A stretch of 50,399 nt of DNA from Pelomyxa schiedti (taxonomy: Eukaryota; Protista; Evosea), in contig JAHLWZ010000388.1 of assembly GCA_020536535.1 (NCBI GenBank), forward strand, positions 1 through 50,399. Direction: 5' to 3'. The position numbers were made by a program, and so were the translations under genes. Of this stretch, positions 8,101-49,333 are shown piece by piece. Each line of letters opens with the position of its first letter. Within the stretch, counting starts at the first letter, position 1. The notes under the pieces are model-generated. The model searched no databases and was not told the DNA's origin. It saw only the letters and a list, made by a program, of their open reading frames with translations.

Positions 8101-11100
8101 TTTTCACATTGGTTGTGTTCCTGCGCTCCGTCAGGCACCTCAGCAGTGTTGTTTTTCCAACGGCACCATCACCCACCACAAGAAGCTTGTGACGCTTCCA
8201 CGCAACAGGCTCACCACTGTACATTACAGACTGTTTCAGAGTGTTCCATTTCTCCGCTCTGGACCGGCTTGGGATTGTGTCCTGTGGATTTTCCACCAGA
8301 TACATGCTGAGTATCTGGGACATTGTGGGACGAGCACGTGGGTCGCGGACCCAGCAGTTCTCCAAAATGGTCTTGGCCCAACTGGGTACTTCTGGTGCCG
8401 GTGGAGATTTTGGCAATCGTGGGAGTATCTTTCCAAACCCCAGGTCCCGCGAAATTTCTACAAAGTTGAGAACAGCCTTGTGGTGCTTTTGAATTCGGCA
8501 GTATGTGGGGTCGGCCTCAAGGTGGCTGAAGGGGGAACTTATGGGATCAACCAGGTTGAAAACAGTCATTGCTGTAGTTGTTTTGGTTTTGTTGTAAGAG
8601 TGGGAGGAATGATGGATGAAGAAGTGTTTACCAAAACTCCAAACATCAGCCTTCGTGTCATACTTTTCACCGTTGAGAACTTCAGGACCATAGGTGAAGA
8701 CCTTGCCCTCTAATGAGCTTCTCGTGGACTTAGATTCTCCGGAATATAGAACTTGAGACAACCCGAAATCGGCAATCTGTTGGATGATAAGTGATTTGTG
8801 GGACAAGGAGAGGAGTTGCGAGTCAACCTTTGCCCAAGGGCCTGGCCCAGTTTCGTCCAATGAGGAAATGAAAATGTTCCCTGTGGTGTGATATATTAAT
8901 ACTCTCTCTGCCACTGAAGTTAAAGAAGACGTGAACCTGTGTGGAGATCGCCGTGGACGATGGGGGGATTCTGTGAGTGCAAATATTCCAAGCCACGTGC
9001 AACATCTTTCAGAATTTTCACCCTCATGGTCATGGGAATGATTCTATCCAAAAGCTGGGTGGTGTTTTCACCTTTTTCAAGGCACACCTGGATCCAACCC
9101 TGCAAGTCCGGCTTCTTGATTTTTGTGTCTCCCAGGATTGTCATGATACTTGGGGGAACAATGGTAACGACGAGTTCCATTACCAACCACAGGTGTGGGT
9201 GAAGGCATGCGCCATAGAACTTGACAACATTTGGATGTGAAGATACCACATTCAGAAGGGTTGTCTCAAAGATAAATTGTGTGATGGATTGATATGTGAG
9301 TTCCCCCAACGGTTGTTTTACAGCAACAGGCAAACCCTTCCGCGTTGCCCTCAACACTTGCCCAAACCCACCTTTGCCCACCGGTGTTTGGGATTGAAAC
9401 TCGATTTCAGTTGGATCGATCACAGGCAGGTGTTCAAGGAGTATGTCTGGTGCAACTTCCGTAAGCTTCACGTCAACTTGCTCTGTCTGATTGTCTGGTG
9501 GGCAACGAAGACATTTCATCCCATATCGTGCAGCATCAAGCACGACTCGTTGCGGGAAACGTGTGATGTCGGGTGGAACGCTGAACACCGAGGAGGTTGG
9601 GGTGGCAGATTGATGCAGGAAGCGAAGCAAACAATGAGAGCAAGGGAAAGATACATCTGCATTCGCTGCGAGGCCAATGTAATAGGACTCGATGAATTGA
9701 GTGATCAAAGTGGTTACATAAATTATCAAGCTCTTCCTTTTCCACAGTGCCGTTTCTTCTTTGCTTGTGATGGTTGGTTCAGATCCAAGAGATGGATCAG
9801 GTGCCTCCTCGATTGTGGTTCGCATGCAAATGTTGATTGTGTGTTGCTTGGCCTCGTGTGTCATAAACAACTTCTGCTTTGTGATGGACGAGGATGCTGA
9901 ATCTTGGATACTGAGATTCTCAACGATAAGACCTTCGTTCCATGCAAACAGAGGGGCAGTTTCTGGAATTCCAAGCACCATCACCATCAACCTTGGGAAA
10001 AACCCGATCGGGAGAAATCTGAACTTGAGTATTCGCCCGCTCATGACGACCTTGGTGCCTGTCCCAGTGGGTGCGGTCCAAAATGAGGCCGCTTCTGCAC
10101 TTCCCTCAGAATAGCGAGGCGCCAGGTCCGGGAGAAGGGAAGGAACTAGTAGCCGGCCATCAGGCAGGGTGAACAGGATTTCAAAAGTCTGAAGCAGCTC
10201 AATAAGGGTGGTGTACTGCTCGGGGGGAAACTCCTCAAAAACATGGTGAATTTTCTTCTGTTCCACAAATCCGTTTGTGAACCAAGTTGTTGTCTTGATA
10301 CTAATGACAGATGTCATCACCTTGGAGAGGTATGAAGGTTTCAGCACAATCAACTCAGAAAGAGGGATTCCTGTTTCCTTTCTTTTCCGCCAGCAGCTTG
10401 ATTTTCGAGAAGATGTGTATAATTGATTGCTGTGCCTGAAATGTATGATGCTCCCTGCATCCAAAAGGAAGTCAGAGCACATGGTAATTTCTCGTTGCTC
10501 TGTGGTATCATACTTCCCAACACCCTTAGCTTTTGCAATTGCAACATATTCATCCCAATGTAATGTGTCAGCCGACATGCTGGCGAGATGTTTGTGCAAT
10601 TTAACCCAGTTCGAGGTGACGGCAATCTTCTGTTGTTTTGCAATTTCCTCCAATCTCTCAGAAACACGCTCCACAGCAGTCATGGATACACAACTGGCCT
10701 CTGTTTCAGTGTTCATGATAATACCATCACCAGTGGCCACACTCAATCCAAAAACACTGTCAAACTGCTTGTCATGAGCTCTCATAATCTGGGCCAAAGC
10801 AGCACAGGCAGATTTGGTTGTGGTTTTGTCAAGGTGCGTTCCAACCAGAAGGATGTGAACCTTCTCACTGTGGCCTGTGGTGTCTGTTCTGTTTGAAGTT
10901 GCTTGCCTGAATGACAGGTTTATCTGATCAACCCAATACTTGATCTTTGGTGGAAGTATCACAGATTCAGATTCACCATCCCATTGAACAAGTGCCAAAT
11001 CGAAAATTAGCAGGAACACGGAGCTGCTGCGCAAGAAGAACTGGTGTGTTGGGTAAAGCACATCTTGACCTCCTGCAGTTTGCGTTACTCAATTAAAGAG

Positions 11101-14100
11101 TGGAAACGAGTGGTGGGGCAAACACACCCAAGTCCCAGGCAACCCACGTGTGTTCGCTGAGGCTGTTCAACTTGAATGGTGGAGGGATAGAAACTCCATC
11201 AGTGGCCATGTTTCTTGTCACATCGGTTGTGTTCATGTTCTTCCTCAGGCACCTCAGCAGTGTTGTTTTTCCAGCAGCACCATCACCCACCACAAGAAGC
11301 TTGTGACTCTTCCACTCAACAGGCTCGCAATTGTGCATTACAAACTGCTTCATTGTGTCCCATTTCTCAACCCTGAACCTGTCTGGGATTGTGTCCAGAG
11401 GATTTTCCATCAGATTGACAAATTTGACCTTGTGCAGCCACTGTGGAAGTGCACTCAGTTGGTTAAAGGACAGGTCAAGTGACTTGCAGCAAGCCACACA
11501 CTTCAAACTTGGGTGAATAGAGGGCAAATTGAGGAAGGACAGGTCCACGTCTTGATGTGACAATGCTCCAGAAAGACCAACTTCCTTCACTGCATTCCAG
11601 TTGTGGGCCTGAACCCACATTCGAAACAACCTTGAGACAACTGCCAGCAGTTTAAAACCTGGCTTCAAGTTCAATAAAATATCAAGCAGTTGGCGCACTG
11701 CAGTTGGTCCCATGTCCCTCACATTGACACCATTTTTGAAAATCAATGATTCCACAATCTCTCGGAATTTGGTGGAATTAGAAGCTGTGAGTAAGGCAAC
11801 TTTCAGAACTTCTACACATGAACCCTCATCCTTTAACACTGTTGGCACGTTTACGTGCAGGAGTGAGCGAATTCCAGTTGAGGGCTCTAACTGAATGCCT
11901 TCTTTGAGGGAGCTCCCCACCATTTCTCCTGAGCTGGAGGCAATGGCCAACATGGCATCAACGGTGTCTTCTGCTTGCCTTGCCCAAATTGGGAGATACT
12001 GTTGCACAGCATTCAACACAATGTCCAGTTTTGTGCTGTCACCCACTGCAACACAACTCCGCATCGCTTTCTTGAAATTGGAGCGATCTCCCGAGTTGAG
12101 GTTGAATTCAGTGATCACTGAATTATAAAGAGAAATATTTTCACCAGTGAGATACCCAGGTCCATGGTTCTTCACTGTTGAAAAAGGAAGAACGAGAACA
12201 GTCGAGAGAGCCAAAGACAGTTAAAAAAAAAAAAAAGAGAACACCAACACACACAGATGGGAATGCAAAGGCTTTGGAGAATCTTGTTTCCTTCGTTTCC
12301 AGCAAGAATCGCTGAAATATTCAAGGTGAATATTGGAGATTACGACTTTGCAGGCGTCAAACAGGCAGGGGGTTTCGTACCTGTCCAATCTTGGACCACC
12401 TGATCCTCGTTTGTTGTTATTGTTGTGTCATAAATAACAGTCAATTTCTCGATCCTTCTGTTTCGCTTCAAAGCGGCAAAAACAGTGGAATCAATCCAAC
12501 TCCCTTTTTATTTCCAGTGTGAGTGTGTGGGGAAGAGAAAGAGAAAATTAAAAAGAAAAGGGAAAAGGACAAGTAAAAAGGACAAGAAAAGGGATACAAT
12601 GAAGTTGCAGTTCTGTGATGCTGAAGTTTGTTCCCAAGAGTGTAACAAACTGTTTGAAGTCCTTGTCCTCACATTTTGTGTTTCCTTTTTGAGAATGAGG
12701 AAGAAGAAACCAATGTAATATGATGGAAGAAGAGAAAGTGAAACTGGAAATGTCGAGTGATGAGAGTTGATCCATGAGCCTGAAAAGCCACTTCTCACTT
12801 CCTTGGGTCAGTGAATCTGGCAGTGGTTAGTGAGTGATACTCGGTGGGAGGAAGAAAGGGAAGGCTGGGGGAGAGAAGGCACTCTGGAGACTCAAACTGA
12901 AGTCATTCCTCTGGAAAGATTGAACAGCTTTGACAACGGCTTTTACAGCACGCTCTGAGAGCACAAAGTCTGCCACCATGGTTTTTGTTAATATTTCAAA
13001 GAATGGGTGTGGGAGAGCAAACCGGAGAGAGAGAGCGATTTCAAGGAAGTGCAAGAACTCAGGTGTGTTGATATTGCCTCTTCCAATTTTTCTTGTTCGA
13101 GTCGATTGAAACCTGTCAAGCACGAACAATCAATTGGTTTGGCTTGAATGTTTGGAAAAATCATGGGAGATGATACTGATTGAGGATCCAATTGCACAAT
13201 ACTGGAGTTCGGTGCATTGAAAAACGGAGGAGAGCAACTCATTGTCAGCCACAGTCAAACCTTTCAACATTTCAAGTAAATGCAAGCCCCCCAAATTTGC
13301 AGGTTTTTTTGTGGAAAATAGTTGAGTTGGTTCACACAAACTTTTCAAAGAAAACTTTGAGCAGATATCTCTTTGGTCAGATATAATCTTGGTCAGGACT
13401 TTGCAGTCACTGAAGCTGTAATAACCTTGATCTCAATTTTAGATGTGTGATGAGAAGTGGTTTTTTGAGTAATTAGCAGGGAGATGACGAAACCGATGTC
13501 AATCACGACTTCGCCATTTGCCTGACTGATGATACTTTGGCTGTCCCTTGTTGTCCACGAATATCGGAAACTTTCCGGCCCATTTGCCGCTGTATTTGAG
13601 CCTTTCTTTTAATACATGGATCGTGTCATTTGGGGATCTAACCTGGGTTTGGCTCAAACTGCGTTTTTGTGCTGAAACCACCGATTTTGGCACCTTTGTG
13701 TGCCTCCCTCAGTATGTCTGTGAGGGTTGTTGCACCTGTCCACTCGGTGATTGTATCGGCGCAAACCTAAAAAATAAATTAATTTATTGTACTCACCAGT
13801 GAACCAATTAAAAAAAAAAATAAATAAATAAAATCTCATAACGTGCATTGGGGACATATACCATCGAAGCCATGGCAAAGCACTCAAGCAACCCAATTGT
13901 TGCACAGGGAGCAAGTGAATGGGAAGCAGAATGGTCAGGATCGAAACCAGCAACAAAAAACAGGAATGGCTGATGTGTTGCCCTGTTTTTTGCCCACAAA
14001 CTCCCATAAAGTAATTCCAAAGTTTCAGGAATTGCATCAAAGAATGCACGATCATTTGGAGTGCAAACAACAAGAACAGCTTTCATTGTTCCCTGTGCAC

Positions 14101-14606
14101 ATCCTTGGAACTCTTGGGGCCTAAGAATAATCCCTTATTTCTTTTTCTGTTGTTTTACTTTGTTCGTGTAATTTTAATAAATAAATGTAAATTAATAAAT
14201 AAAACGCAACAAACAAAACAACAACAATAAATAATACTAATCATAACAACAACAACAATTATGCATACCTGTCCACGTAAATCAATTCAATTGCCTTGTG
14301 CTGCCCCAGCGGCGCCAGCACGCCTGCGCCCCCCTGCGCACCGCCCCCCCCGCCACCCTTGTTGTTCCCCTTCCCTTTCCCGCGGGAGCGGCGGCCACCC
14401 CGACGAGTCGCTGCGGCGTCGTCCTCCCCCCCCTCGGCGGGGGCTGCGCGGACGAGGCGGTCCAGCGCGTCGGGGGAGGGTGCCACCACGTAGCACTTTG
14501 GCGGCGCGTTCTCGCCGTCTTCTTCGTGTGGCTCCCCGTCTCCTCGCACGGCGTGTGGGTGTGGGTGTGGCGGTGCGGGACTGCTAGTACTCGTTGGTGT
14601 GGACAT
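5177..14606 (-). CDS. Roco-family kinase A, multi-exon: degenerate GTPase-like N-terminus, LRR-like region, ROC-COR-kinase, then a second ROC-COR-kinase
   Basis: ATG at 14606. ROC G1 GDGAAGKTT (ORF 11093..12214) and GDGAVGKTT (ORF 7979..8914); G3 WDLG|GQD across an intron; G4 GTHLD. Kinase motifs GKGGFG, VAVK, HGDLHTGN (spliced), DFG, (A/G)PE and DVWSFG occur in both modules. Manual exon phases were checked for the first exons (14606-14269, 14120-13862, 13766-13643, 13601-13494). Confidence 0.88.
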
Positions 14607-14918
14607 GTGGTAAGTTGGTTTGAGTTATTTTGTAAGTTCGTTTCGACGCATCGCAACAGTTGCCGCTACATCTCTGTGATATCACCTTCATACGCGGTTC
14701 CCTGAAAACTGTGTTGATAGGAAAATAAGGCAAGAAATTTCATTGAAAACTGTTTAGTGTACGGGTCATCTGTTGGGGACAATTGGTGGTTTTTTGTCTT
14801 GAGGTGATTGGTTATTGTTGTTGTAGCTCCTCAGGGAAATGGGTGAGAACGAATGTTCTGGTTCCACATGGTTGATACCAACTAGTTGTCTTTTCAATGA
14901 AATCAAACCAGGAGGAAA

Positions 14919-15813
14919 ATGTCTGCAGCGGCACCCCAGCAGGTATGTCGTCTGCGTTTGTGCCCGGTTGTTTTATCCAAGTCTCAATTCCACAGCAGTG
15001 CACACTTTTTGAGGCAGAGCGCAATGTCATCAAAACACTGACTGCCTCTAATCCAATGAAAGCAGGGGAGATTTGGTTCCTCATCTCATCGACTTGGTTC
15101 AAGAGCTGGAAAAAATACGTATCATACTTTTACTTTCCCTCATGCTCATCTGGCTGGGGTGCTGTATGTTATTTGCACTTATTTCTTTGGTGGGGTTTGA
15201 ACCAGGGTTAGGCAACACCCAGACCAGGACCGATCCGAAATAGTGAGCTCCTTGGGGAAGACGGTGAGCTCAAACATTCCGTGTTGGAGCTGACACACTA
15301 TGAGGTGGTCAGTGGTGTTGTGTGGAATACACTGAAGGGATGGTATTCTGGTGGGCCTGACATCCCTCGTCCTGTGATTTCCTTCCTTGGTCTGTACGGA
15401 AATGTTTGTCTCTCAGTGGAGCTGCAGCCACTGAGACTGCACATTGTTAAATCATCTGATACAACGGCTTCTGTGTTGGCATACTTCAGCAGAATTGACA
15501 CTGTTGGTCATCTTAAGGTACACTTCAAGCATAAGCACAAGTATAATTGACACCAGAAAACAATGTGTGAGAGAATGGGATTGGAGCCAGACAACATCCA
15601 CGTGTGGGACTACCACGGCGGCTCTTGGCTCAAGAAGCTTCATGATACGCAAACTCTGCACTCTGAACAGATTATTAACAACCAAAAGGTACTTCGAACA
15701 ATACTATGTTTCTAGAAAATAATCCTTCCTTGCAGGTTATGCTGGCTGAAAAAAATGATGCTGGGCTTTGGCCAAGCCATGGACGAGTGTATTTTGGTGT
15801 TTCCAATAGCTAA
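14919..15813 (+). CDS. Stand-alone DUSP + Ubl domain protein (USP4/11/15-type N-terminus without a catalytic domain), copy 1
   Basis: Spliced product MSAAAPQQ..WFLISSTWFKSWKKY|ATPRPGPIRNSELL...HYEVVSGVVWNTLKGWYSGGPDIPRPVI...VELQPL (DUSP), then FSRIDTVGHLK|KTMCERMGLEPDNIHVWDY...|VMLAEKNDAGLWP (Ubl end motif), with a stop at 15811-15813. Confidence 0.8.
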
Positions 15814-16475: not shown

Positions 16476-18973
16476 ATGCAACCAACACAAACAACAATAG
16501 AGACAAAGAAACAATGGGTGGTTTGGGTGTCACACTTCGTCTGGGAATCCGTCGTACCCCTGATGCTCCCCGACGCCGCTTCCCACTGCTTCTTCCCGAC
16601 ACCGTCTTGTAGCCCCCCTCACTACTATCGTCATGGGCCCACTCACGCCTCATCGTCGTCCTCATCGACAACAACGATCGCCGCCGCAACCCATCATCCC
16701 ACCACAGCCACAACACCGACGGAAGAGCAGGAGGAGGATGAGGAGGAGGACGACAACAACATGGGGATCGAGTATCACCGGATACCACCACTCAAGCGCA
16801 AGCACGTGGTCCCGCTGCTGCGTCTTGCCGAGGCCCTGTTCCCCCTCGTTGGGCTCGTGTGCCGGGGCGTGAGGCGGTCGCGGGGCGCCAGGTCGTCGAG
16901 CCGCCGCCGGCTCCTCGAGTGCTGCGGCGAAGCCAACAGCCCCCGCTGCTGCGCGTGGGTCGTGGCTCGCTACGGGTGCACCGGGCAGCGGTACTCGCTC
17001 CACTCCCCCACTGATGCCACTGAGGGTGTGCAGTGGCCTTTGAGGGCGGGGGGCCACTGGAAGGAGTGCATGTCGGTGTTGATTGGGATGAGTGCTGGTG
17101 GGCACCTTGATTCTGCAAAAAGGTTTGTTGACGAGGGAGCCCCTTGGGGTTCTCTGTCCTGGCCCGATTCCGTGGCTTCTACTGCTGCTGCTACTGCTGC
17201 TGCTGCTGCTGCTACTGCTACTGCTTCGGCTTCATCGCCTTCGAGTCGTGGAGTTGTGTTCTACCCACTGCCAACTTGCGCGTCTCCAAGCAGCGGCGGT
17301 GCTGATGTGACAATCGGCACTCTTGACAGCGTGTTTTGGGGTAATAAGGCCATCCCAAGGCTTCTTGACCGATCAGCCAAACGGGGACACCTGGAGACAC
17401 TCAAGTGGGCCCTCTCAAGATTTGGAGGAACTGATGAGAGTTGGTGGTTGCTGAGACGAGTGTTCGCGGCAGCCCGTGGCTTCCAGCTGGACACCATCAT
17501 CTGGTTGTCACACACATTCAACTTGACAGAAAGGCTGACTGGGAAGTTTGACCTCAAGTACTGGGGAGTACCCAAGAATGTATCTGACGTCAAAAGGCTT
17601 GTTGAAACCTTTCCTCAATGGAAGCACGATTTTGAGGCCCTGGCGTGGAAAACAGTGAAGAGCAAATCGCCAACAGAGGAGATCATAAAGGTGTGCCAAT
17701 GGCTTGTGGAGTATTTTCCCGATGAGCACTTTTACTTCACTGACACAAAGCACTGTGAAGTCGTCAAGTGGGCATTGCAAAGTGTAAATTCCTCCTTGGT
17801 TGATGTCAGCCTCAGGTGGTACTTGCCAATTGCAGAGGATGTGCAGTTTCTGAAGTGGCTCATTGAGAGGGCACACCCAACACAATCGGAGTTTATTCTG
17901 GCCTGCTCAAACAGAAAGGACAACGTGGCCATTGCAAAATTGGTGGCTGCGAAAACCCTCCCAAGTGCGGATGAGGTGATGGAGGGTCTTAATATGGCAC
18001 TGTCTGACTGCAATTCCCGAATTGCCACGTGGCTGGAGGAATACTACTTCAACATCACCAAATCAAAGCCGAAGCTCACTCTTCCTGCAGTGTGTGCGTT
18101 TCATTGCTTTGATTCTTTTCCACATAACTGGGCTGAGTGGTTTTGCTGCCATGCCGAGGGTGTACCAATGACAGAGAAAGAAGTTCTTCGTGCACTTCAA
18201 GGGATGAGGGGTGATGAAGATCGGCTGGGATCCCATATTGAGCCCTCCCTATTTCTGATAGAGAAATTTTCCCCCAATTTGAGTTCATTGAACCTACTCG
18301 CCTACCTGAAAGCAGCAGCAGAAACTGGTGATTTCCGGAATGTAAAGAAGGTGGTCTCCTTGGCAGAGTCATCCCCAGAGTTAGAAATCCAGCCAATTGA
18401 TGCTCTGGAAGTGCTCTATGAATCTATTACACACAGCAAGATATTCAAATGGCTGATGTTGCACTTCAATTTGGTTTCAGTCATGCAGGAGAGGGACAAA
18501 GTGCAACGACTCATGATGCTTATTTCCTGTGAAAAATACAGCTGTGCACGCTGGTTTTTTAAGCAGCTGCACGGTCTGTCCCCCAAGGTACTACCCCCCA
18601 ATTCACATACACAAACTGACTGCTTAAACCCAACTCACCTCCTCAACAGAGTTTATTTATGGAAGACAAGATTAAAACACGAGGAACTGCAATGGTGGGT
18701 GGCCATTGGAATGTTGACTTTGCAGGCTTGAGTTTGCTGATGAGAATGTTCCCGGACATCAACATAGGAGAGTGGTCCAGGTTATCGCTTGTGGCTTTTT
18801 CATCACCACTCAACCTCCAGCTTTTGCACCTTGAGCCCCTCCCGTCTGAGCTGGAGCCCTTTTACCCTTTTTCCTTCAGCTTGGATGAAAGCATGTGGTG
18901 GCTGCAGGGTAGGACGCAAACCCCTCATTTCAACACCACACAAGCTCCTTTGGAGGACGAAGACACACTGTGA
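16476..18973 (+). CDS. Ankyrin-like helical repeat protein, ~811 aa, lineage-specific family
   Basis: 751-aa ORF with degenerate ankyrin-like motifs (GMSAGGHLDSAKRFV, SAKRGHLETLKWAL, AAARGFQLDTIIWL). A phase-0 GT-AG intron at 18588-18649 joins it in frame to ORF 18659..18973. Confidence 0.72.
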
Positions 18974-22100: not shown

Positions 22101-25100
22101 TATCAGTGGCCTCAGTTTTTTTCACATTGGTTGTGTTCCTGTTCTTCCTCAGGCACCTCAGCAGTGTTGTTTTCCCCACACCACCATCACCCACAAGTAA
22201 AACCTTGTGACTCTTCCACTCAACAGGCTCACCACTGTACATCACAAACTGCTTCATTGTGTCCCATTTCTCAGCCCTGAACCTGCTTGGGATTGTGTCC
22301 AGAGGATTTTCCGTCAGATTGACAAATTTGACTCTGTGCATCCATTGAGGAAGTGCACTCAGTTGGTTGAAGGACAGGTCAAGTGACTTGCAGCAAGCCA
22401 CAAATTCCAAAATGGGGGGAAGAGTGCGCAAATTGAGGAAGGACAGGTCCACGTCTTGATGTGACAATGCTCCAGAAAGGCCAACTTCCTGCACTGCAGT
22501 CCAGTTGTGGGCCTCAACCCACACTCGAAACAATCTCGAGACAACTGACAGCAGTTTAAAGCCTGGCTTGAAGGTCAGTAAAATATCAAGCAGTTGGCGC
22601 ACCGCAGTTGGTCCCATGTCTCTCACATTGACACCATTTTTGAAAATCAATGATTCCACCATCTCTTTGAATTTGGAAAGATTGGAGGCTGTCTGGATTG
22701 CAGTTTGAAGAAGTGTGACACATGATTCCTCATCTTGGATGACTGTTGGCACTTTTACCTTTTTTACTCTTGGTTCTGGGTCTTGGATTTCTGTTGAGTT
22801 GGGTAGTATCTGAAGGCCTCTTTTGATGGAGCTCCCCGCCATTTCCTGTGAGCTCGATGCAATATCCAACATGATATCAATCGCATCTTCTTCTTGTTCT
22901 GGACCGGCCCAAATTGGGAGATACTGCTGTGCAGCATTCAACACAATGTCCAGTTTTGTGCTGTCACCCACTGCAACACAACCTCGCATTGCTTTCTTGA
23001 AATTGGAGCTATCTCCCGAGTCGAGGTTGAATTCAGTGATCACTGAATTATAAAGAGAAATATTTTCACCAGTGAGATCCTCAGGTCCAAGGTTATTCAC
23101 TGAGGAAAAGAAAGAAGGAGAACAGTTCAGAGAGAGCAAAGACAGTTAAAAAAAAGAACAAGCAAAAAGAGAGAACACCAACACACACAGATGGGAATGC
23201 AAAGGCTTCGGAGAATCTTGTTTCCTTCATTTCCATCAAGGACCACTGAAATAAGGTGAACATGTTGGAGATGGTGTGTTGGGAGTCTTACCTCTCCACT
23301 CCCCTGCTGGATGAAGGCCGTGTATTGTGTCATAAATAACAGTCAATTTCTCGATCCTTCTGTTTCGTTTCAAAGCGGCAAAAACGGTGGAATCAATCCA
23401 ACTCCCTTGTTATTTCCAGTGTGAGTGTGTGGGTGAAGAGAAGAGAAAAGGGGGAAAAGGGATACAATGAAGCTGGAGTTCTTTGATGCTGAAGTTTGTT
23501 CCCAAGAGTGTCACAAACTTTTCGAAGTCCTTATCCTCACATTTTGCGTTTCCTTTCAGAGAATGAGGAAATCAATTTAATATATGATGGGGGGAGAAGA
23601 GAAAGTGAAACTGGAAATGTCTAGTGACGAGAGTTGATCCATGAGCATGAAAATCCACTTCTCACTTCCTTGGGTCAGTGAATCTGCGGTGATCAGTCAG
23701 TGAACCTCAATAGTCTCAAAGGGAGGTTTGGGGAAGGAGAACACACTCTGGAGACTCAAACTGAAGTCATGCCTCTGGAAAGATTGAACAGCTTTGACAA
23801 CGGCTTTTACAGCACGCTCTGAGAGAACAAAGTCTGCCACCAGATATTTTAGTGTTAACCATTACACTCACAAAGGAAAAAGGGAAAAAGGGAAAAAGGG
23901 AAAAAGGGAAAAAGGGAAAAAGGGAAAAAAAAGGAAAAAAAAAAAAGCAAATGGGGTTTGGGGTGAAGAACCGGAGAGAGAGAGCGATTTCAAGGAAGTG
24001 CAAGAACTCAGGTGTGTTGATATTGCCTCCTCCAATTTTTCTTGTTCGGGTCGATTGAAACCTGTCAAACACAAACAATCAATTGGTTTGGCTTGAATGT
24101 TTTGAAAAATCATGGGGGATGCTACTGATTGAAGACCCAATTGCACAATATTGGAGTTTGGTGCATTGAAAAACGGAGGAGAGCAACTCATTGTCAGCCA
24201 CAGTCAAACCTTCACAAAGTAAGTGCAAGCTCCAAATTTGAAACAGTCGGCTCACAAACTTTTCAAAGAAAACTTTGGGCATATGTCTCTGTTGGCAGAC
24301 ACAATCTTGGTCAGGACTTTACAGTCACTGAAGCTGTAATAACCTTGATCTCAATTTTAGTTTTTTTGTTCGTCAAGGATATGACGAACCGATGTCAATG
24401 ACGACTTCGTCAGTTGCCTGACTGATGATACTTTGGCTGTCCCTTGTTGTCCACGAATATCGGAAACTTTCTGGCCCAGTTGCTGCGAGATTTAACGTTA
24501 TCCTTTTAATTGATAAATGGTATCCATTTGGGGATCCAACCTGGGTTTGGCTCAAACTGCGTTTTTGTGCTGAAACCTCCGATTTTGGCACCTTTGTGTG
24601 CCTCCCTCAGTATGTCTGAGACTATTGTCGCACCTGTCCACTCGGTGATTTTATCGGCGCAAAACTAAAAGTTAGTATTTATCAGAGACATATCAAGAAA
24701 GTATGAGTCTTGTTGCAAATGGATTGGGGTTGCATATACCATTGAAGCCATGGCAAAGCACTCAATCAACCCAACAGCTGCACGGGGAGCATTGTCAGGA
24801 TCGAAACCAGCAACAAAAAACAGGAATGGCTGCTGTGTTGCCTGGTTTTTTGCCCACGAATGCCCGTAAAGTAACTCCAAAGTTTCAGGAATTTCGTCGA
24901 AGAATGCACGATCATTTGGAGTGCAAACAACAAGAACAACTTTCATTGCTCCCTGTGCACATCCTCGGAACTCTTGAGGCCTAAAAATTCCTTAATTCCT
25001 TTCTCTGGATTTCTAGGAAACTTTTTTCAAATAATTACAAATAAAAGCAACAAACAAAGAAACAATAAAACGAGGCACGAATATATACCCACACAATAAT

Positions 25101-25621
25101 AGTAGTAGTAGTAAATACAGGTTACTAGTGCCGGACAAACCCCCACCCCACCCCATGCGCACACACCTGTCCACATAAATCAATTCCATGGAGTTATCAA
25201 CCCCCAACTGCACCACCACCCCCCCCTGCCGCTCCCCCTCCCCCGTGTCCCCCTGTGCCCCACCCCCGCCCCCCCCTTGTTGTTCCCCCCCCTTGTTGCC
25301 CTTGCTCCCCTTGTTCCCCTTGTTCCCCTTGCCCCCCTTCCCCTTCCCCTTCCCTCCTGCGCCCCCACGCCCGCGGCGCCCGCCCCCCCGAGTCGCTGCA
25401 GCGTCCTCCTCCGCTGCTGCCAGGACGAGGCGGGCCACCGCGTCGGGGGAGGGTGCCACCACGTAGCACTTGGGCGGCGCGCTCTCGTCCGGCGGCGCGT
25501 CTCGTTCCTCGTGGTGGTGGCGGCGCTCGTCGGGGCGGCTACCACTCGTGGTGGTGTTGGTTGTTGTCGCGTCGTCCCCCTGGGCGTCTTGGGGGATTGT
25601 CGCTGTGGGGGTCTTGGACAT
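19125..25621 (-). CDS. Roco-family kinase B (degenerate GTPase-like N-terminus, LRR-like region, ROC, COR, kinase)
   Basis: ATG at 25621. GDGGVGKTT in ORF 21982..23139; ROC-COR-kinase N-lobe in ORF 19742..21985; DFG/APE exon in 19424..19648; last exon 19125..19403. The glycine loop is altered (SQGCFG) and VAVK reads VVVK. Confidence 0.88.
23875..23946. repeat. Intronic (GGGAAAAA)n microsatellite in Roco B
   Basis: Directly visible 8-mer repeats; a polypyrimidine tract on the coding strand. Confidence 0.9.
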
Positions 25622-29800: not shown

Positions 29801-32800
29801 CTTTTAAAAATGGGAAATGAGAGGTGGGGCAAACACACCCAAATCCCAGGCAACCCATGTGTGTTCACTGCGGCTGTTCAACTTGAATGGTGGAGGGATA
29901 GAAACTCCATCAGTGGCCTCGTTTTTTTTCACATCGGTTGTGTTCATGTTCTGCCTCAGGCACCTCAGCAGTGTTGTTTTCCCCACACCACCATCACCCA
30001 CAAGTAAAACTTTGTGACTCTTCCACGGAACAGGATCACCACTGTACATCACAAACTGCTTCATTGTGTCCCATTTCTCGGCCCTGAACCTGTCTGGGAT
30101 TGAGTGCAGAGGATTTTCCATCAGATTGACAAATTTGACTCTGTGCATCCATTGAGGAAGTGCACTCAGTTGGTTGAAGGACAGGTCAAGTGACTTGCAG
30201 CAAGCCACAAATTCCAAAATGGGGGGAAGAGTGCGCAAATTGAGGAAGGACAGGTCCACGTCTTGATGTGACAATGCTCCAGAAAGGCCAACTTCCTGCA
30301 CTGCAGTCCAGTTGTGGGCCTCAACCCACACTCGAAACAATCTCGAGACAACTGACAGCAGTTTAAAGCCTGGCTTGAAGGTCAGTAAAATATCAAGCAG
30401 TTGGCGCACCGCAGTTGGTCCCATGTCTCTCACATTGACACCATTTTTGAAAATCAATGATTCCACCATCTCTTTGAATTTGGAAAGATCGGAGGCTGTC
30501 CGGATTGCAGTTTGAAGAAGTGTGACACATGATTCCTCATCTTGGATGACTGTTGGCACTTTTACCTTTTTTAATGTTGAGTCTTCCTCAGGAATTTCGA
30601 TTGGCACGGTTTTTAAGCCCTTTCCAGCCTTAGTTGGGGCTAACTGAATGCCTCCTTTGATGGAATTGCCCGCCAACCCTCCTGTGTTTGATGCAATGGC
30701 CAACATGATATCAATCACATCTTCTTGCTCTGGTCCTGTCCAATTTGGGAGATACTGTTGTGCAGCATTCAACACAATGTCCAGTTTTGTGCTGTCACCC
30801 ACTGCAACACAACCTCGCATTGCTTTCTTGAAATTGGAGCGAACTCCCGAGTCGAGGTTGAATTCAGTGATCACTGAATTATAAAGAGAAATATTTTCAC
30901 CAGTGAGATCCCCAGGTTCAAGGTACTTCACTGAGGAAAAGAAAGAACGAGAACAGTTGAGAGAGAAAAGACAGTTTAAAAAAAAAAGAGAACACCAACA
31001 CACACAGATGGGAATGCAAAGGCTCCGGAGAATCTTGTTTCCCCCGTTTCTTTCAAGGACCGCTGAAATAATACACAAGGTGAACATGTTGAAGATGGTG
31101 AGTTGGGAGTCTTACCTATCCACTCCCCTGCTGGATGAAGGTTGTTTATTGTGTCATAAATAACAGTCAATTTCTCGATCCTTCTGTTTCGTTTCAAAGC
31201 GGCAAAAACGGGGGCTTCAATCCAACTCCCTTGTTATTTCCAGTGTGAATGGAAGAGAAAAGGGAAAAAGGGATACAATGAAGCTGGAGTTCTTTGATGC
31301 TGAAGTTTGTTCCCAAGAGTGTCGCAAATTTTTCTATGGCCTCAGCCTCACATTTTGCGTTTCCTTTTTGAGAATGAGCAAAATCAATTTAAAATATGAT
31401 GGGGGGAGAAGAGAAAGTGAAACTGGAAATGTCTAGTGACGAGAGTTGATTCATGAGCCCGAAAATCCACTTCTCACTTCCTTGGGTCAGTGAATCTGCG
31501 GTGATCAGTGAGTGATACTCAGTGGGCTTGGAGTGGATGGCTGGGGGGAAGGGAGAGAACACACTCTGGAGACTCAAACTGAAGTCATGCCTCTGGAAAG
31601 ATTGAACAGCTTTGACAACGGCTCTTACAGTGAGCTCTGAGAGCACAAAGTCTGCCACCAAATATTTTTGTTAATATTTCCAAGGAAAGGGAAAAAATAA
31701 ATGGGGATCACGAACCGGAGAGAGACAGCGTTTTCAAGGCAGTGCAAGAACTCAAGTGTGTTGATATTGCCTCTTCCAATTTTTCTTGTTCAGGTTGGTC
31801 GAAAGCTGTCAAACAATCAATTGGTTTGGCTTGAATATTTGGAAAAAGCAGATGATACTGATTGAGGATCCAATTGCACAATATTGGAGTTTGGTGCATT
31901 GAAAAACGGAGGAGAGCAACTCATTGTCGGCCACAGTCAAACCTTTCAACATTTCACAAAGTAAGCAATAGAACCTCCAAAATGGCACAAACTTTTCAAA
32001 GAAAACTTGGAGCAGAAATCTTTGTTGGAAGACACAATCTTGGTCAGGACCTTGTAGTCACTGAAGCTGTAATAACCTTGATCTCAATTTTAGTTTTTTT
32101 GTTCGTCAAGGATATGACGAACCGATGTCAATGACGACTTCGTCAGTTGCCTGACTGATGATACTTTGGCTGTCCCTTGTTGTCCACGAATATCGGAAAC
32201 TTTCTGGCCCAGTTGCTGCGAGATTTAACGTTATCCTTTTAATTGATAAATGGTATCCATTTGGGGATCCAACCTGGGTTTGGCTCAAACTGCGTTTTTG
32301 TGCTGAAACCTCCGATTTTGGCACCTTCGTGTGCCTCCCTCAGTATATCTGCAAATATTGTTGCATCTGCCCACTGTGTGATTTTATCGGCGCAAAACTA
32401 AAGCTAAATTAATAGATATGCTATAAAGTGCATTGGGGCCATATACCATTGAAGCCATGGCAAAACAATCAAGTAATCCAACTGCTGGATGGGAAGCAGG
32501 AGAACAGGAAGTTGCATGATCAGGATCGAAACCAGCAACAAAAAAAAGAAATGGTTGCTGTGTTGCCCTGTTTTTTGCCCACGAACGACCGTAAAGTAAT
32601 TCCAAAGCTTCTGGAAGTGCGTTGAAGAATGCGCGATCAGTCAGAGTGCAAACAACAAGAACAACTTTCATTGCTCCCTGTGCACATCCCCGGAACTCTT
32701 GAGGCCTAAAAATTCTTTAATCACATGTCTTTGTAGTTTTTCCAGTAACTTTTTTTCCTTTGTTTTTTAAAGAAAAAAAGAACTATAAAAATCCCCCCAT

Positions 32801-33636
32801 GAGCTCCATCCATCCACCCACACACATACACGCACACACCTGTCCACATAAATCAATTCAATGGACTTATCAACCCCCAGTTGCACCACCTGACCCTTCA
32901 CACTACCACCACCACCTGCATCCCCTCCTTTCCCCTTGCCCCCTGTCCCCGTACCCCCCTTGCCTCCCCCTCCTCCGGTCTCGCTCTCGCTCTCGCTCTC
33001 GCTCCCGTACGCCCCCGTGCCCGTGCCCGTGGGCGTGGCCGCGGCCGCCGCGGTTGGCTTGTCCACCACCACCGCCGGAGACGCTCGTGGGGTGGCGGGG
33101 CTGCTGGGGATGGCTGGCGAGGCCGATGGCGGGGGTGGCGCGGGGGCTGCCGCGGCCGCCGCTTCCTTTGCGGCGCGGACGAGGCGGTCCAGCGCGTCGG
33201 GGGAGGGTGCCACCACGTAGCACTTTGGCGGCGCGTTCTCGGCCGGGTCGTACTCCCCGCCGTACTCCTCGTCGTTGTCTTCTTCCTCATCCTCCTCCTC
33301 CTCCTCCTCCTCCTCCTCTTCTTCTTCCTCCTCCTCGTCCTCGCCGCCGCTGTCGTCACCACCATCGGCGGCCCCCCCGGCGTCGCGGTCTCCTTCGTGG
33401 GCGCCTGGTGGGACGGCACCCTGCGGATGGGGCTCGGGATCGGGCGGCGGGGGGGCGCTCGTGGTAGTGGTAGTTGAGGCGGCGGCGGTGGTGGTGGTGG
33501 TAGCCGCGTCGTCGCCGGGGTGTCCGGGCTCGTCTTGGGGGGTAGGTGTATTGGACTTGGACGACCTGGATTTGGATTTGGATTTGTACTTAAGGGATGG
33601 GGGTGTGGATGTGGACGTGGAAGTAGATGTCGACAT
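26891..33636 (-). CDS. Roco-family kinase C (degenerate GTPase-like N-terminus, LRR-like region, ROC, COR, kinase)
   Basis: Likely ATG at 33636 (MSTSTSTS...). GDGGVGKTT in ORF 29804..31087; ORF 27467..29764 has GTHLD, GKGGFG, VAVK and HGDLHTG; DFG/SPE exon; TAA at 26891-26893. Confidence 0.88.
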
Positions 33637-44760: not shown

Positions 44761-44860
44761 NNNNNNNNNNNNNNNNNNNNNNNNNNNNNNNNNNNNNNNN
44801 NNNNNNNNNNNNNNNNNNNNNNNNNNNNNNNNNNNNNNNNNNNNNNNNNNNNNNNNNNNN
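44761..44860. other. Scaffold gap (100 N)
   Basis: Run of 100 N between two ROC-COR segments. Confidence 1.
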
Positions 44861-47800: not shown

Positions 47801-49333
47801 GTTTGGCTTCAATGTTTTGAAAAATCATGGGGGGATGATACTGATTGAAGACCCGATTGAGCAATACTGGAGTTTGGTGCATTGAAAAACGGAGGAGAGC
47901 AACTCATTGTCAGCCACAGTCAAACCTTTCAACATTTCCCAAAGTAAGTGCAATTTGTAGTTTTTTGTGGGAAACAGTGTTGGGTTGGTTCACAAACTTT
48001 TCAAAGAAAACTTTGAGCAGATGTCTCTTTTGTCAGACAAAATCTTGGTCAGGACTTTGCAGTCACTGAAGCTGTAATAACCTTGATCTCAATTTTAGAT
48101 TCGAGGTGAGAGGTTGTTTTTTGCGTAGTTAGTATCAAGGAGATGACTAACCGATGTCAATCACGACGTCATCATTTGCCTGACTAATGATGTTTTTGCA
48201 GTCCCTTGTTGTCCACGAATATCGGAAACTTTCCAGCCCAGTTGTTGCTGTATTTGACCCTTTTTTTGATCATGAATGGGTAAACTGTATTCATTTGGGG
48301 ACAAACCAACCTGGGTTTGGCTCAAATTGCGTTTTTGTGCTGAAACCACCGATTTTGGCACCTTTGTGTGCCTCCCTCAGTATGTCCGTGAGGGTCGTTG
48401 AACTTGTCCACTCTGTGATTTTATCGGCGCAAAACTAAAAAATAAATGAATAGAGCTCTCATACAGTGTATTGGGGCCAGATACCATTGAAGCCATGGCG
48501 AAGCACTCAATCAACCCAACAGCTGCATGGGGAGCAAGTGAATGGGCAGTATTGTCTGGATTGAAACCAGCAACAAAAAACAGGAATGGCTGCCGCGTTG
48601 CCCTGTTTTTTGCCCACAAACTCCCATAAAGTAATTCCAAAGTTTCAGGAATTGCGTCGAAGAATGCACGATCATTTGGAGTGCACACAACAAGAACAAC
48701 TTTCATTGCTCCCCGTGCACATCCCTGGAACTCTTGAGGCCTAAAAATTCCTTATTTTTTACTTATGTCGTTTTACTGTGGTTCTATACCATAAAGTAAA
48801 AGAATAAAGGCAAACAAACGAAACAATAAAAGGAGGCACGATTATGTACTAATTATGCACCTGTCCACATAAACCAATTCGATTGACTTGTGCGGCCCCA
48901 GCGCCGCCGCCGTGTCCCCCTGTGCAACACCCGCGCCCCCGCCGCCTTCCCCCTCCTTGTTGCCCTTGCTCCCCTTGCTGCCCTTGCTCCCCTTGCTGCC
49001 CTTGCTCCCCTTGTTGTTCCCCTTCCCGCGCATGACGCGGCTGCGGCGGCCGCGGCCACCTCGGGCCGCTGTGGCGTCCGCCCCCTCCCCCTCGGCGAGG
49101 GCTGCGCGGACGAGGCGGTCGGCCGCGTCGCGGGAGGGTGCCACCACGTAGCACTTGGCCGGCGCGGGCGCGTCTGGCCCCTCGTCGCCATCGCCGCCGC
49201 CCTCCCCGTCGCCTCGCTCGGCGGGTTGCTGGTGTGGGCGTGGGTGTGGCGGAGGCGTGGGGCTAGTAGTACTCGGGGTGGTTGTTGTTGCTGTGGTGAC
49301 CGCGTTGTCCCCGCTTGTGGGTGTCTTGGACAT
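44861..49333 (-). CDS. Roco D, 5' part (degenerate GTPase-like N-terminus, LRR-like region, ROC, start of COR), possibly frameshifted
   Basis: ATG at 49333 (MSKTPTSG...KCYVVAPSRDAADRLVRAA...ELVYVDR). GDGGVGKTT in ORF 45704..46714; ROC/COR in 44703..45773. A 5-bp duplication at 44903-44912 shifts the frame. Confidence 0.8.
47578..47685. repeat. Intronic (GGAAAAA)n microsatellite, about 15 copies, in Roco D
   Basis: Directly visible perfect 7-mer array. Confidence 0.95.

Follow-up and report, generated by a model that had tools for sequence, protein, structure and literature searches.

An orphan N-terminal module conserved across a tandem array of Roco kinase genes in Pelomyxa schiedti

Roco kinases are intensively studied because of LRRK2, and how the Roc-COR-kinase core is controlled from the N-terminus is still an open question. 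The stretch of DNA analyzed here (the window, 50,399 nucleotides from the amoeba Pelomyxa schiedti) carries four Roco genes, A to D, that form a tandem, recombining array, and each of them opens with the same three short 5' exons. What kind of domain these exons encode is the question raised by this locus. The initial annotation had read it as a degenerate Rho/Ras-like GTPase placed as a decoy or sensor in front of an active Roc domain. At present it is a well-defined orphan domain, neither a demonstrated pseudo-GTPase nor a demonstrated immune decoy.

All four modules are located on the minus strand, at 14606-13643 (A), 25621-24541 (B), 33636-32274 (C) and 49333-48311 (D), and their conserved part of about 165 residues is split by a variable Gly/Lys/Arg-rich insert. 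In copy A, exon 1 (14269..14606) starts with a Ser/Thr/Pro-rich tail, followed by a conserved strand and helix (14436-14507), the insert (14328-14435) and a conserved '..LG....ELIYVD' segment (14271-14327), and ends at an AG/GT donor. Exon 2 (13862..14120) codes for 86 residues that make up the best conserved core, with C-x4-R, LELLYG, QPFLFFVAGFD and FAMASM, and exon 3 (13643..13766) contributes 'CAD.I', a predicted C-terminal helix and a conserved 'AK.GG(F/Y)S.K' tail. The corresponding three exons lie at 25167..25621, 24740..24980 and 24541..24664 in copy B, at 32840..33636, 32447..32705 and 32274..32397 in copy C (where exon 1 has a long acidic, Ser/Thr-rich tail), and at 48861..49333, 48485..48740 and 48311..48434 in copy D. 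Splice junctions (AG/GT, TTAG/G, ATG/GTAT and TTTAG/, all canonical sites) and intron phases are identical in the four copies. In gene A, a fourth exon (13489..13605, minus strand) encodes a conserved linker, 'F(R/K)YSW.TR ... IIDIG', that leads from the module to the LRR exons, and the downstream body (8923..12220, minus strand) comprises a helical region, the LRRs, a Roc P-loop exon ending in ...WDLG at the junction, and a Roc-COR-A-COR-B-kinase exon. DUSP-Ubl genes are interleaved with the Roco genes.

Relatives of the module were sought with an exon-2 profile in 1.84 billion proteins, and only two further paralogues were recovered, both Roco-linked and both from P. schiedti. The module is thus specific to this species as far as sequence comparison reaches, with relatives elsewhere undetected in those 1.84 billion proteins. 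One paralogue, P0002 (KAH3766749.1), is a 'leucine-rich repeat kinase' of 1753 aa in which, as in the exons of gene A, Pfam identifies Roc, COR-A, COR-B and kinase domains, with Roc followed directly by COR as is characteristic of Roco proteins. The Roc motifs downstream of the module (GDGxxGKT, WDLGGQ, THLD) are intact. We handled the window copies exon by exon and used P0002 as the complete example protein; copies A-D are collinear with it across LRR, Roc, COR and kinase. Its module, the sixth copy, is about 55% identical and free of the insert, and shares the place and phase of the module intron, which in this gene is a GC-AG intron. The fifth copy is annotated in GenBank as a separate hypothetical protein of 276 aa (P0001). 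A word search with exon 2 gave no candidate, that is, no free-standing homologue of 47-150 aa, and a Roco that would bridge the gap by having an intact Ras or Rab domain at its N-terminus was not recovered either, since word searches with regions 1-200 and 190-560 of P0002 returned P0002 itself and nothing else.

The stand-alone annotation of P0001, together with the fact that word searches gave no long annotated protein of the window bearing the module, could mean that the three exons belong to a small gene of their own, or are an artefact of annotation, and lie outside the Roco protein. We consider this very improbable. In all four genes the module is continued on its own strand by linker and LRR exons that are collinear with the single-gene model P0002, and no gene intervenes (the exon 4 linker of copy A is collinear with residues 210-248 of P0001 and 203-230 of P0002), and the P0001 locus itself runs on into LRR exons. 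P0001 looks mis-annotated or truncated, since an upstream donor makes it skip the conserved 'ELIYVD'. That the published annotation was built with transcript evidence through PASA/EVM (PMC8887013) was also counted against a separate gene.

Conservation of the core across the four copies, as first proposed, was borne out not only by exons, junctions and phases but also by the proteins: exon 2 of B-D is 76-87% identical to that of copy A, 59 of the 86 positions are invariant among A-D, and 38 of the 86 remain so when the fifth copy and P0002 are included. The dN/dS values were 0.27-0.51 for exons 2 and 3 and 0.28-0.48 for the Roc-COR-kinase exon, indicating that the module is constrained to the same degree as the enzymatic core. 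The most conserved residues form three clusters, each located just past a predicted strand: Cys-x4-Arg (strand 4), AGFD (strand 5) and FAMASM-x-CAD (strand 6). Their being the best preserved part of the module suggests, at the level of sequence, a putative binding or active site that has been kept rather than a passive relic.

The insert sits between the 'KCYVVAPSPDA..RLV.AA' helix region and '..LG....ELIYVD', is rich in G/K/R/E/A, measures 36, 61, 88 and 58 residues in copies A, B, C and D, and is absent altogether from the divergent paralogue P0002. The early description of a copy-specific insert of very different lengths therefore holds, with the addition that short tandem repeats, in frame and with periods of 9, 6 and 3, make up the inserts: a period-9 repeat inside that of copy B (25226-25408), repeats of period 3, 6 and 15 in copy C (32899-33162) and a period-9/18 repeat coding for KGS/KGN units in copy D (48920-49093). 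It is a slippage-prone, disordered Gly/Lys/Arg tract in one surface loop, varying by repeat slippage and not by substitution. Such a basic disordered loop might be a spacer or tether that tolerates changes of length.

We have examined the module for the nucleotide-binding motifs of GTPases, and under the alignment originally proposed the bare sequence shows that G1, G3 and G4 are absent. At the place of G1 (GxxxxGK[ST]) copies A-D and the L001 copy have 'YVVAPS(P/R)DA', and P0002 has 'YVLGPEPGTSK', one residue short and with no Lys at the right place. At the place of G3 (DxxG) we find 'VDRPQ' ('FSPST' in P0002), and at those of G4 ([NT]KxD) and G5 (SA[KL]) 'AGFD(P/I)' and 'FAMASM'. By its sequence, then, the module is devoid of a nucleotide-binding motif. 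That the alignment to the Rac fold itself rises above chance was not confirmed. The pairs matched by eye are about 20% identical, mostly at hydrophobic strand residues, and similarity to GTPases was given by no statistical method: in Pfam at E<=10, neither the exons nor P0002:1-210 matched Ras, Roc or Arf; the PDB, searched with an exon-2 and a whole-module profile, gave 0 matches at E<=10; and when the module was compared by hhalign (local, global and low-mact) with a profile of the Roc domain of these same genes, the probability was 0.1%, and the sole long forced alignment did not pair the strands expected to be equivalent. Scans of single exons against Pfam, NCBIfam and PADLOC likewise gave only noise, under which we place YmgM (E 0.055), an NTP diphosphatase (E 0.19) and FoP_duplication (E 2.2, on the Gly/Arg insert). 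The same segments also fit by eye what we take to be TIR-like patterns (plant-TIR '..IVVFS..Y..S.WCL.EL..' and 'PIFY.VDPS'), and presumably a rhodanese-type 'C-x4-R...G' loop can be laid on them as well. Since these patterns fit too, by-eye matches are unspecific and were given little weight.

Some features do recall a G domain. A conserved hydrophobic 'VVxLG' and a turn precede 'ELIYVD', where a G domain has its b2-b3 hairpin (rows with 'ELIYVD' were misplaced by MAFFT, and the folding runs used alignments that omit them), and there are relic-like motifs at the place of G1 in P0002 ('LYVLGPEPGTSK') and at that of G3 in the other copies ('VDRPQEF'). In the GTPase fold, helices flank a sheet of six strands in the order 2-3-1-4-5-6, of which strand 2 is antiparallel. 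The first AlphaFold2 model has the element order b1-a1-b2-b3-a2-b4-a3-b5-b6-a5. Between strands 5 and 6 the module has a segment of just 11-17 residues, which leaves no room for a helix 4 of normal length. The element order cannot settle ancestry, because a G-like topology and a flavodoxin-like one of CheY/TIR type differ by one edge strand. When the two AlphaFold2 runs were compared by Foldseek against the PDB, by VIA-align in its wide mode and by an Atlas shape search, all matches were at noise level; among them, small GTPases aligned from end to end made up about 10 of the 37 highest-ranking weak rows that Foldseek gave for model 1, and the best VIA-align rows for the same model were Toprim-type folds. 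The language-model neighbours that have a family (two paralogues, two segments) were all Ras, Roc, Arf, Gtr1/RagA or CENP-M, the last being the nearest named neighbour of the C-terminal 130 residues, and none belonged to CheY, TIR, rhodanese or phosphatase families. Their scores of 0.80-0.89, with 95-162 shared features, fall in a range attributed to chance or to distant relatives. On these leads (neighbours, the element order of one model and relic-like motifs) the module may be a pseudo-GTPase of putative fold.

Taken jointly, the data are best explained if the module is a translated, selectively maintained, lineage-specific alpha/beta domain that heads each Roco gene of the array, with a G-like or flavodoxin-like fold and a regulatory role, to which we assign a rough probability of 0.45. 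The fold would most likely be a three-layer alpha/beta sandwich of G-domain or flavodoxin-like type, and in the former case the module would be a pseudo-GTPase in the style of class I, unable to bind GTP. The module would probably be a non-GTPase regulatory or docking unit. Its contact or ligand site would be the patch of invariant residues where strands 4-6 are predicted to end on the C-terminal side (Cys-x4-Arg, AGFD, FAMASM-x-CAD), and it would act either on Roc-COR/kinase in cis or on a partner.

A possible, more tentative alternative is that the module is some other Rossmann- or flavodoxin-like alpha/beta accessory domain, unrelated to GTPases and with its own ligand-binding or Cys-dependent catalytic site, hence functional in itself and no pseudo-enzyme. 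Its invariant residues lie just after predicted strands, where Rossmann-like domains put their active sites, and conservation between P0002 and the other copies is lowest at the equivalents of a nucleotide site, in the loop following strand 1 and where strand 3 ends. The Toprim-type rows of model 1 point the same way, and amoebozoan Rocos with another N-terminal domain derived from an enzyme, an inactive myotubularin, are known (PMC2927912). Against it, no such family was matched in Pfam, NCBIfam, PADLOC or PDB profiles, the language-model neighbours belong exclusively to the GTPase clan and the structural matches are all noise. We regard as doubtful the further step by which the head would be a hitherto undescribed alpha/beta domain whose live putative pocket, lined by the invariant Cys-x4-Arg loop, AGFD and FAMASM-x-CAD, senses a small anionic ligand or the redox state, or does Cys-dependent chemistry, and so gates Roc-COR-kinase in cis; were it true, an anaerobic amoeba would possess a family of ligand- or redox-gated kinases of LRRK type. 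A special case of the pseudo-GTPase reading derives the module from a Roc domain of the same gene that was duplicated internally and then decayed. Downstream of strand 3 and its Asp there is a conserved Gln, and two residues ahead of this Gln a codon is interrupted by an intron in the module (its first) as well as in Roc ('VDR^PQ' and 'WDLG^GQ'). However, the phases of these introns differ (2 vs 1), nothing in Roc corresponds to the second module intron, neither the Asp nor the Gln is present in P0002, and the profile-profile comparison with Roc was null, so this origin appears unlikely. We give still less credit to the integrated decoy or sensor, in which the module would imitate a GTPase of Rho/Rab type that pathogen effectors or regulators target, so that modifying it would trigger the Roco kinase. 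The tandem, recombining array, the interleaving with DUSP-Ubl genes and the hypervariable loop are circumstantial context for it. On the other hand, similarity to real Rho or Rab was not detected by Pfam or PDB profiles, effectors, GEFs and GAPs recognize the switch regions, which in the module are precisely what is missing or has been replaced, selection on the core is of the ordinary purifying kind, with diversifying selection not being seen, and the loop changes by slippage rather than by substitution.

Plant NLR integrated decoys also are extra domains fused to an LRR nucleotide-switch signalling protein in a tandem recombining cluster. However, they are recognizably homologous to effector targets (WRKY, HMA, kinase domains), while this module has no identifiable free-standing counterpart, the search of 1.84 billion proteins having given Roco-linked paralogues and none that stands free as an effector-targeted host protein would. 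Known pseudo-GTPase domains, that is, GTPase folds that lack the G motifs (PMC5593906), resemble the module in other respects: they are about the size of a G domain, lie in or are attached to signalling proteins, have all G motifs degraded and are thought to be scaffolds or interaction modules. They differ in that their fold comes from crystal structures and their failure to bind nucleotide was measured, whereas the module is known from sequence and its fold is putative; furthermore, its helix 4 would be missing or very short and its sequence link to them is undetectable. The IMLRK proteins (inactive myotubularin-LRR-ROCO-kinase, PMC2927912) are likewise Roco kinases found in many copies in amoebozoans, notably archamoebae, with a catalytically inactive, enzyme-derived domain before LRR-Roc-COR-kinase, as proposed here. 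Their N-terminus, a PH-GRAM plus a myotubularin phosphatase fold, spans several hundred residues and is detectable by HMM; Pfam found no myotubularin or GRAM match in P0002 or in the exons of the window, and a module of about 165 residues is too small for that fold.

LRRK2, LRRK1 and other Roco kinases share the downstream LRR, Roc (GxxxxGKT, DxxGQ, THLD), COR-A, COR-B and kinase. LRRK2 has N-terminal ARM and ANK repeats and binds Rab GTPases in trans. We know of no described Roco with the present module in cis, and a full-text literature search for 'Roco' with 'pseudoGTPase' found no paper. The value of the finding hinges on a structure. A Roco subfamily whose extra domain is compact and strongly conserved would lend itself naturally to the study of control in cis, be that domain a second, dead G-like one or a ligand-binding fold of a new type, and it comes with built-in comparisons, a loop-free paralogue and copies with loops of 36-88 residues.

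The DNA of the window is eukaryotic and intron-containing, and carries four LRR-Roc-COR-kinase (Roco) genes on the minus strand, copies A to D. We have found that the module encoded by their 5' exons 1-3, of about 165 residues, is a genuine and well-delimited orphan domain, restricted to one species, that heads a Roco subfamily. A tblastn search of the window with three segments from the 5' end of gene A detected exactly four occurrences, one ahead of each Roco gene and none elsewhere. Taking the splice sites straight from the genomic sequence, exons 1, 2 and 3 are located (all on the minus strand) at 14606-14269, 14120-13862 and 13766-13643 in copy A; 25621-25167, 24980-24740 and 24664-24541 in B; 33636-32840, 32705-32447 and 32397-32274 in C; and 49333-48861, 48740-48485 and 48434-48311 in D. 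The junctions (..GAC AG|GT.., ..TTAG|G CCC.., ..ATG|GTAT.. and ..TTTAG|..) are common to all four. The initial annotation had already placed the domain at the head of every Roco copy, at coordinates that match ours within a few bases, and had described its core as conserved; exon 2 (80-86 residues) indeed showed 76-87% identity to copy A, and all four copies agree at 59 of its 86 positions.

Exon 1 starts with a Ser/Thr/Pro-rich tail, followed by a conserved 'APPKCYVVAPSPDA.DRLVRAA', a Gly/Lys/Arg-rich variable tract and a conserved '(V/A)(V/A).LG....ELIYVD'. The copy-specific insert reported before was recovered, with 36, 61, 88 and 58 residues in A, B, C and D; it would sit at the switch-I position if 'VVxLG'-'ELIYVD' is the b2-b3 hairpin, which the conserved 'VVxLG' and the turn ahead of 'ELIYVD' resemble. 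In-frame tandem repeats with periods of 9, 6 or 3 (e.g., KGS/KGN units) make up the tract, so its length differences are slippage products. The dN/dS of exons 2 and 3 was 0.27-0.51 (Nei-Gojobori, copies A-D) and could not be told apart from that of the Roc-COR-kinase exon in these genes (0.28-0.48). The module is coding sequence under constraint. The dS values were 0.14-0.41 in the head module (exons 2-3 of A-D) and 0.44-0.79 in the core Roc-COR-kinase exons (starting at 11073, 21967, 29776 and 44688) outside the C-D pair. For A-B, A-C, A-D and B-D, four of the six pairs, head dS was about half of core dS; for B-C it was 0.57 of core dS, and C-D was reversed (0.41 vs. 0.20, i.e., twice). The closest pair also differs by region, A-B in the head and C-D in the core. 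This discordance suggests that the tandem copies exchange sequence by gene conversion or recombination.

We searched 1.84 billion cluster representatives with an exon-2 profile (HMMER) and found only two real matches, P0001 (KAH3766751.1, 276 aa, annotated 'hypothetical protein Pelo_1416') and P0002 (KAH3766749.1, 1753 aa, annotated 'leucinerich repeat kinase'). Both belong to Pelomyxa schiedti and lie on contig JAHLWZ010000116.1 (the stretch bearing them is called L001 here); the module is restricted to this species. The window encodes neither, and they are therefore fifth and sixth copies. P0002 is about 55% identical in exon 2 and about 45% overall. Its first module intron (L001 10214-10270) is GC-AG, a class amounting to 1.59% of P. 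schiedti introns (PMC8887013), and matches the GT-AG introns of the window copies in position and phase. The GenBank model of P0001 uses an upstream donor and omits the '...KSIELIYVD' segment (L001 17520-17900). At this locus the open frame continues past '...KSIELIYVD' to the AG|GT donor common to the window copies, and LRR exons lie downstream. P0001 is therefore the same type of gene, a fifth Roco head that was wrongly modelled or is cut short close to the end of the contig.

The initial annotation had read the module as a degenerate Rho/Ras-like pseudo-GTPase with destroyed G motifs. These motifs are absent, as it had proposed, and the small-GTPase similarity was undetectable wherever a search gave a statistic. 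No exon, nor P0002:1-210, matched Ras, Roc or Arf in Pfam at E<=10 (in the same protein, the Roc domain reaches 5e-14), NCBIfam and PADLOC gave no match to the module, and neither the exon-2 profile nor that of the whole module retrieved a PDB chain at E<=10. The profile comparison with the genes' own Roc domains, given below, was negative as well. Ras superfamily membership failed in every motif and profile test, and whether the module belongs to the pseudo-GTPase class depends on its fold. A language-model feature search (P0002:20-200, P0001:86-215) returned near neighbours that, where a family name was available, were all Ras, Roc, Arf, Gtr1/RagA or CENP-M, the latter a class-I pseudo-GTPase (PMC5593906); the scores (0.80-0.89, 95-162 shared features) are in a range that, for this tool, signifies chance or distant relatives. 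P0002 retains 'LYVLGPEPGTSK' at the would-be P-loop, and the other copies 'VDRPQEF' at the would-be DxxGQE. We take these neighbours, the hairpin, the relic motifs and the intron placement described below as post hoc leads for a G-like fold.

The structural test put forward with that reading was run with AlphaFold2 on P0002, a complete spliced sequence, the window exons supplying partial rows of the alignment. Residues 1-210 (model 1) gave a mean pLDDT of 47.7 and pTM of 0.37, and residues 22-190 (model 2) 51.3 and 0.47. The order of elements in model 1 (pLDDT 47.7), b1-a1-b2-b3-a2-b4-a3-b5-b6-a5, is G-domain-like save for the missing helix 4; in model 2 the N-terminal 67 residues were essentially unstructured and agreement with model 1 started only from strand 4. 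Foldseek searches of the PDB stayed at E 0.4 or above for model 1 and at 2 or above for model 2, about 10 of the 37 top weak rows for model 1 being Cdc42, Ran, Sar1, Rab, Rac or Arf (TM 0.22-0.29), and in an Atlas shape search with the predicted module all TM were <0.4. A G domain differs from a CheY/TIR-type flavodoxin-like domain by one edge strand, and the likeness to CheY has been remarked before (PMC5593906); the element order is therefore no proof of ancestry.

Four groups are invariant across the six sequences, 'VV.V.C-x4-R.FF', 'P..LELLYG..WA.N', 'QPFLFFVAGF' and 'FAMASM-x-CAD.I', which places them just past predicted strands 4, 5 and 6; at the sites that would match phosphate-binding loops P0002 differs from the remaining copies. 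Rather than a passive relic, these clusters resemble a preserved, putative binding or active site along the C-terminal edge of a parallel sheet. The Cys-x4-Arg loop comes directly after a hydrophobic strand and before a helix (14065-14048 in A); it resembles the anion-binding loops of Cys-dependent enzymes, with no family match in support. We consider the module a translated, lineage-specific head domain of these Roco kinases, whose alpha/beta fold, site and role we infer. A G-domain-like fold incapable of GTP binding has, in our estimate, slightly less than even odds (about 0.45), and the pseudo-GTPase label is plausible as a hypothesis. The module would act as a regulatory or docking unit via the invariant Cys/Arg/Asp patch, and its disordered basic loop would be a dispensable tether, since P0002 has none. 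For a fold that is predicted only, p190RhoGAP and CENP-M offer the nearest functional analogues in their class-I pseudo-GTPase domains (PMC5593906), and the nearest architectural one is the amoebozoan IMLRK family, with an inactive myotubularin ahead of LRR-ROCO-kinase (PMC2927912). In the library that we searched, no paper pairs 'Roco' with 'pseudoGTPase'.

The same invariant clusters could belong to a different Rossmann-like domain that has a ligand or catalytic site of its own, a reading that we regard as rather unlikely beside the G-like leads. Origin by duplication of Roc, a sub-case of the G-domain-like reading, is improbable. Every Roc domain is split by a phase 1 intron inside the G3 motif, WDLG|GQ (11120-11075 and equivalent sites in the other Roc copies), and module intron 1, in the codon two residues ahead of the Gln of 'VDRPQEF', is likewise placed, in a different phase; the profiles of the module and of the genes' own Roc domains matched with a probability of 0.1% (hhalign), and the only long alignment, obtained by lowering the threshold, did not keep the proposed strand equivalences in register. 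An integrated decoy, as initially suggested, appears highly improbable: the conservation pattern lends it no specific support, ordinary purifying selection acts on the core, and the sole hypervariable part changes via repeat slippage. That the three exons are not part of the Roco protein is hardly credible. In P0002, one gene model joins the module, here without any insert, to LRRs, Roc, COR-A, COR-B and kinase; the annotation drew on transcript evidence via PASA/EVM (PMC8887013). All four window genes are collinear with P0002 (module, linker, LRR, Roc, COR, kinase).

In the kinase of the Roco copies, VAVK and DFG are present, and the catalytic loop is HGDLH..N, not HRDLK..N (8923-8940 and equivalent sites), i.e., non-RD with Lys replaced by His, which makes kinase activity uncertain. 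A run of 100 N at 44761-44860, a scaffolding gap inside copy D, lies between two occurrences of the 'GGQDVLY...' Roc exon, which start at 45689 and 44688. This apparent duplication may be an assembly or scaffolding artefact; P_RNA_scaffolder was used for this genome (PMC8887013). Between genes A and B there is a 751-codon ORF (16476-18731, plus strand) with Ala/Ser/Thr low-complexity runs, its sole family match being a faint ankyrin (E 0.055). A DUSP-domain gene (14897-15550, plus strand; Pfam DUSP, E 9e-6) lies head-to-head with gene A, and on contig JAHLWZ010000116.1 DUSP or DUSP-ubiquitin-like genes (L001 16098-16902 and 19200-20251) alternate with the Roco copies. The array therefore appears to repeat as [Roco][DUSP-Ubl] units.
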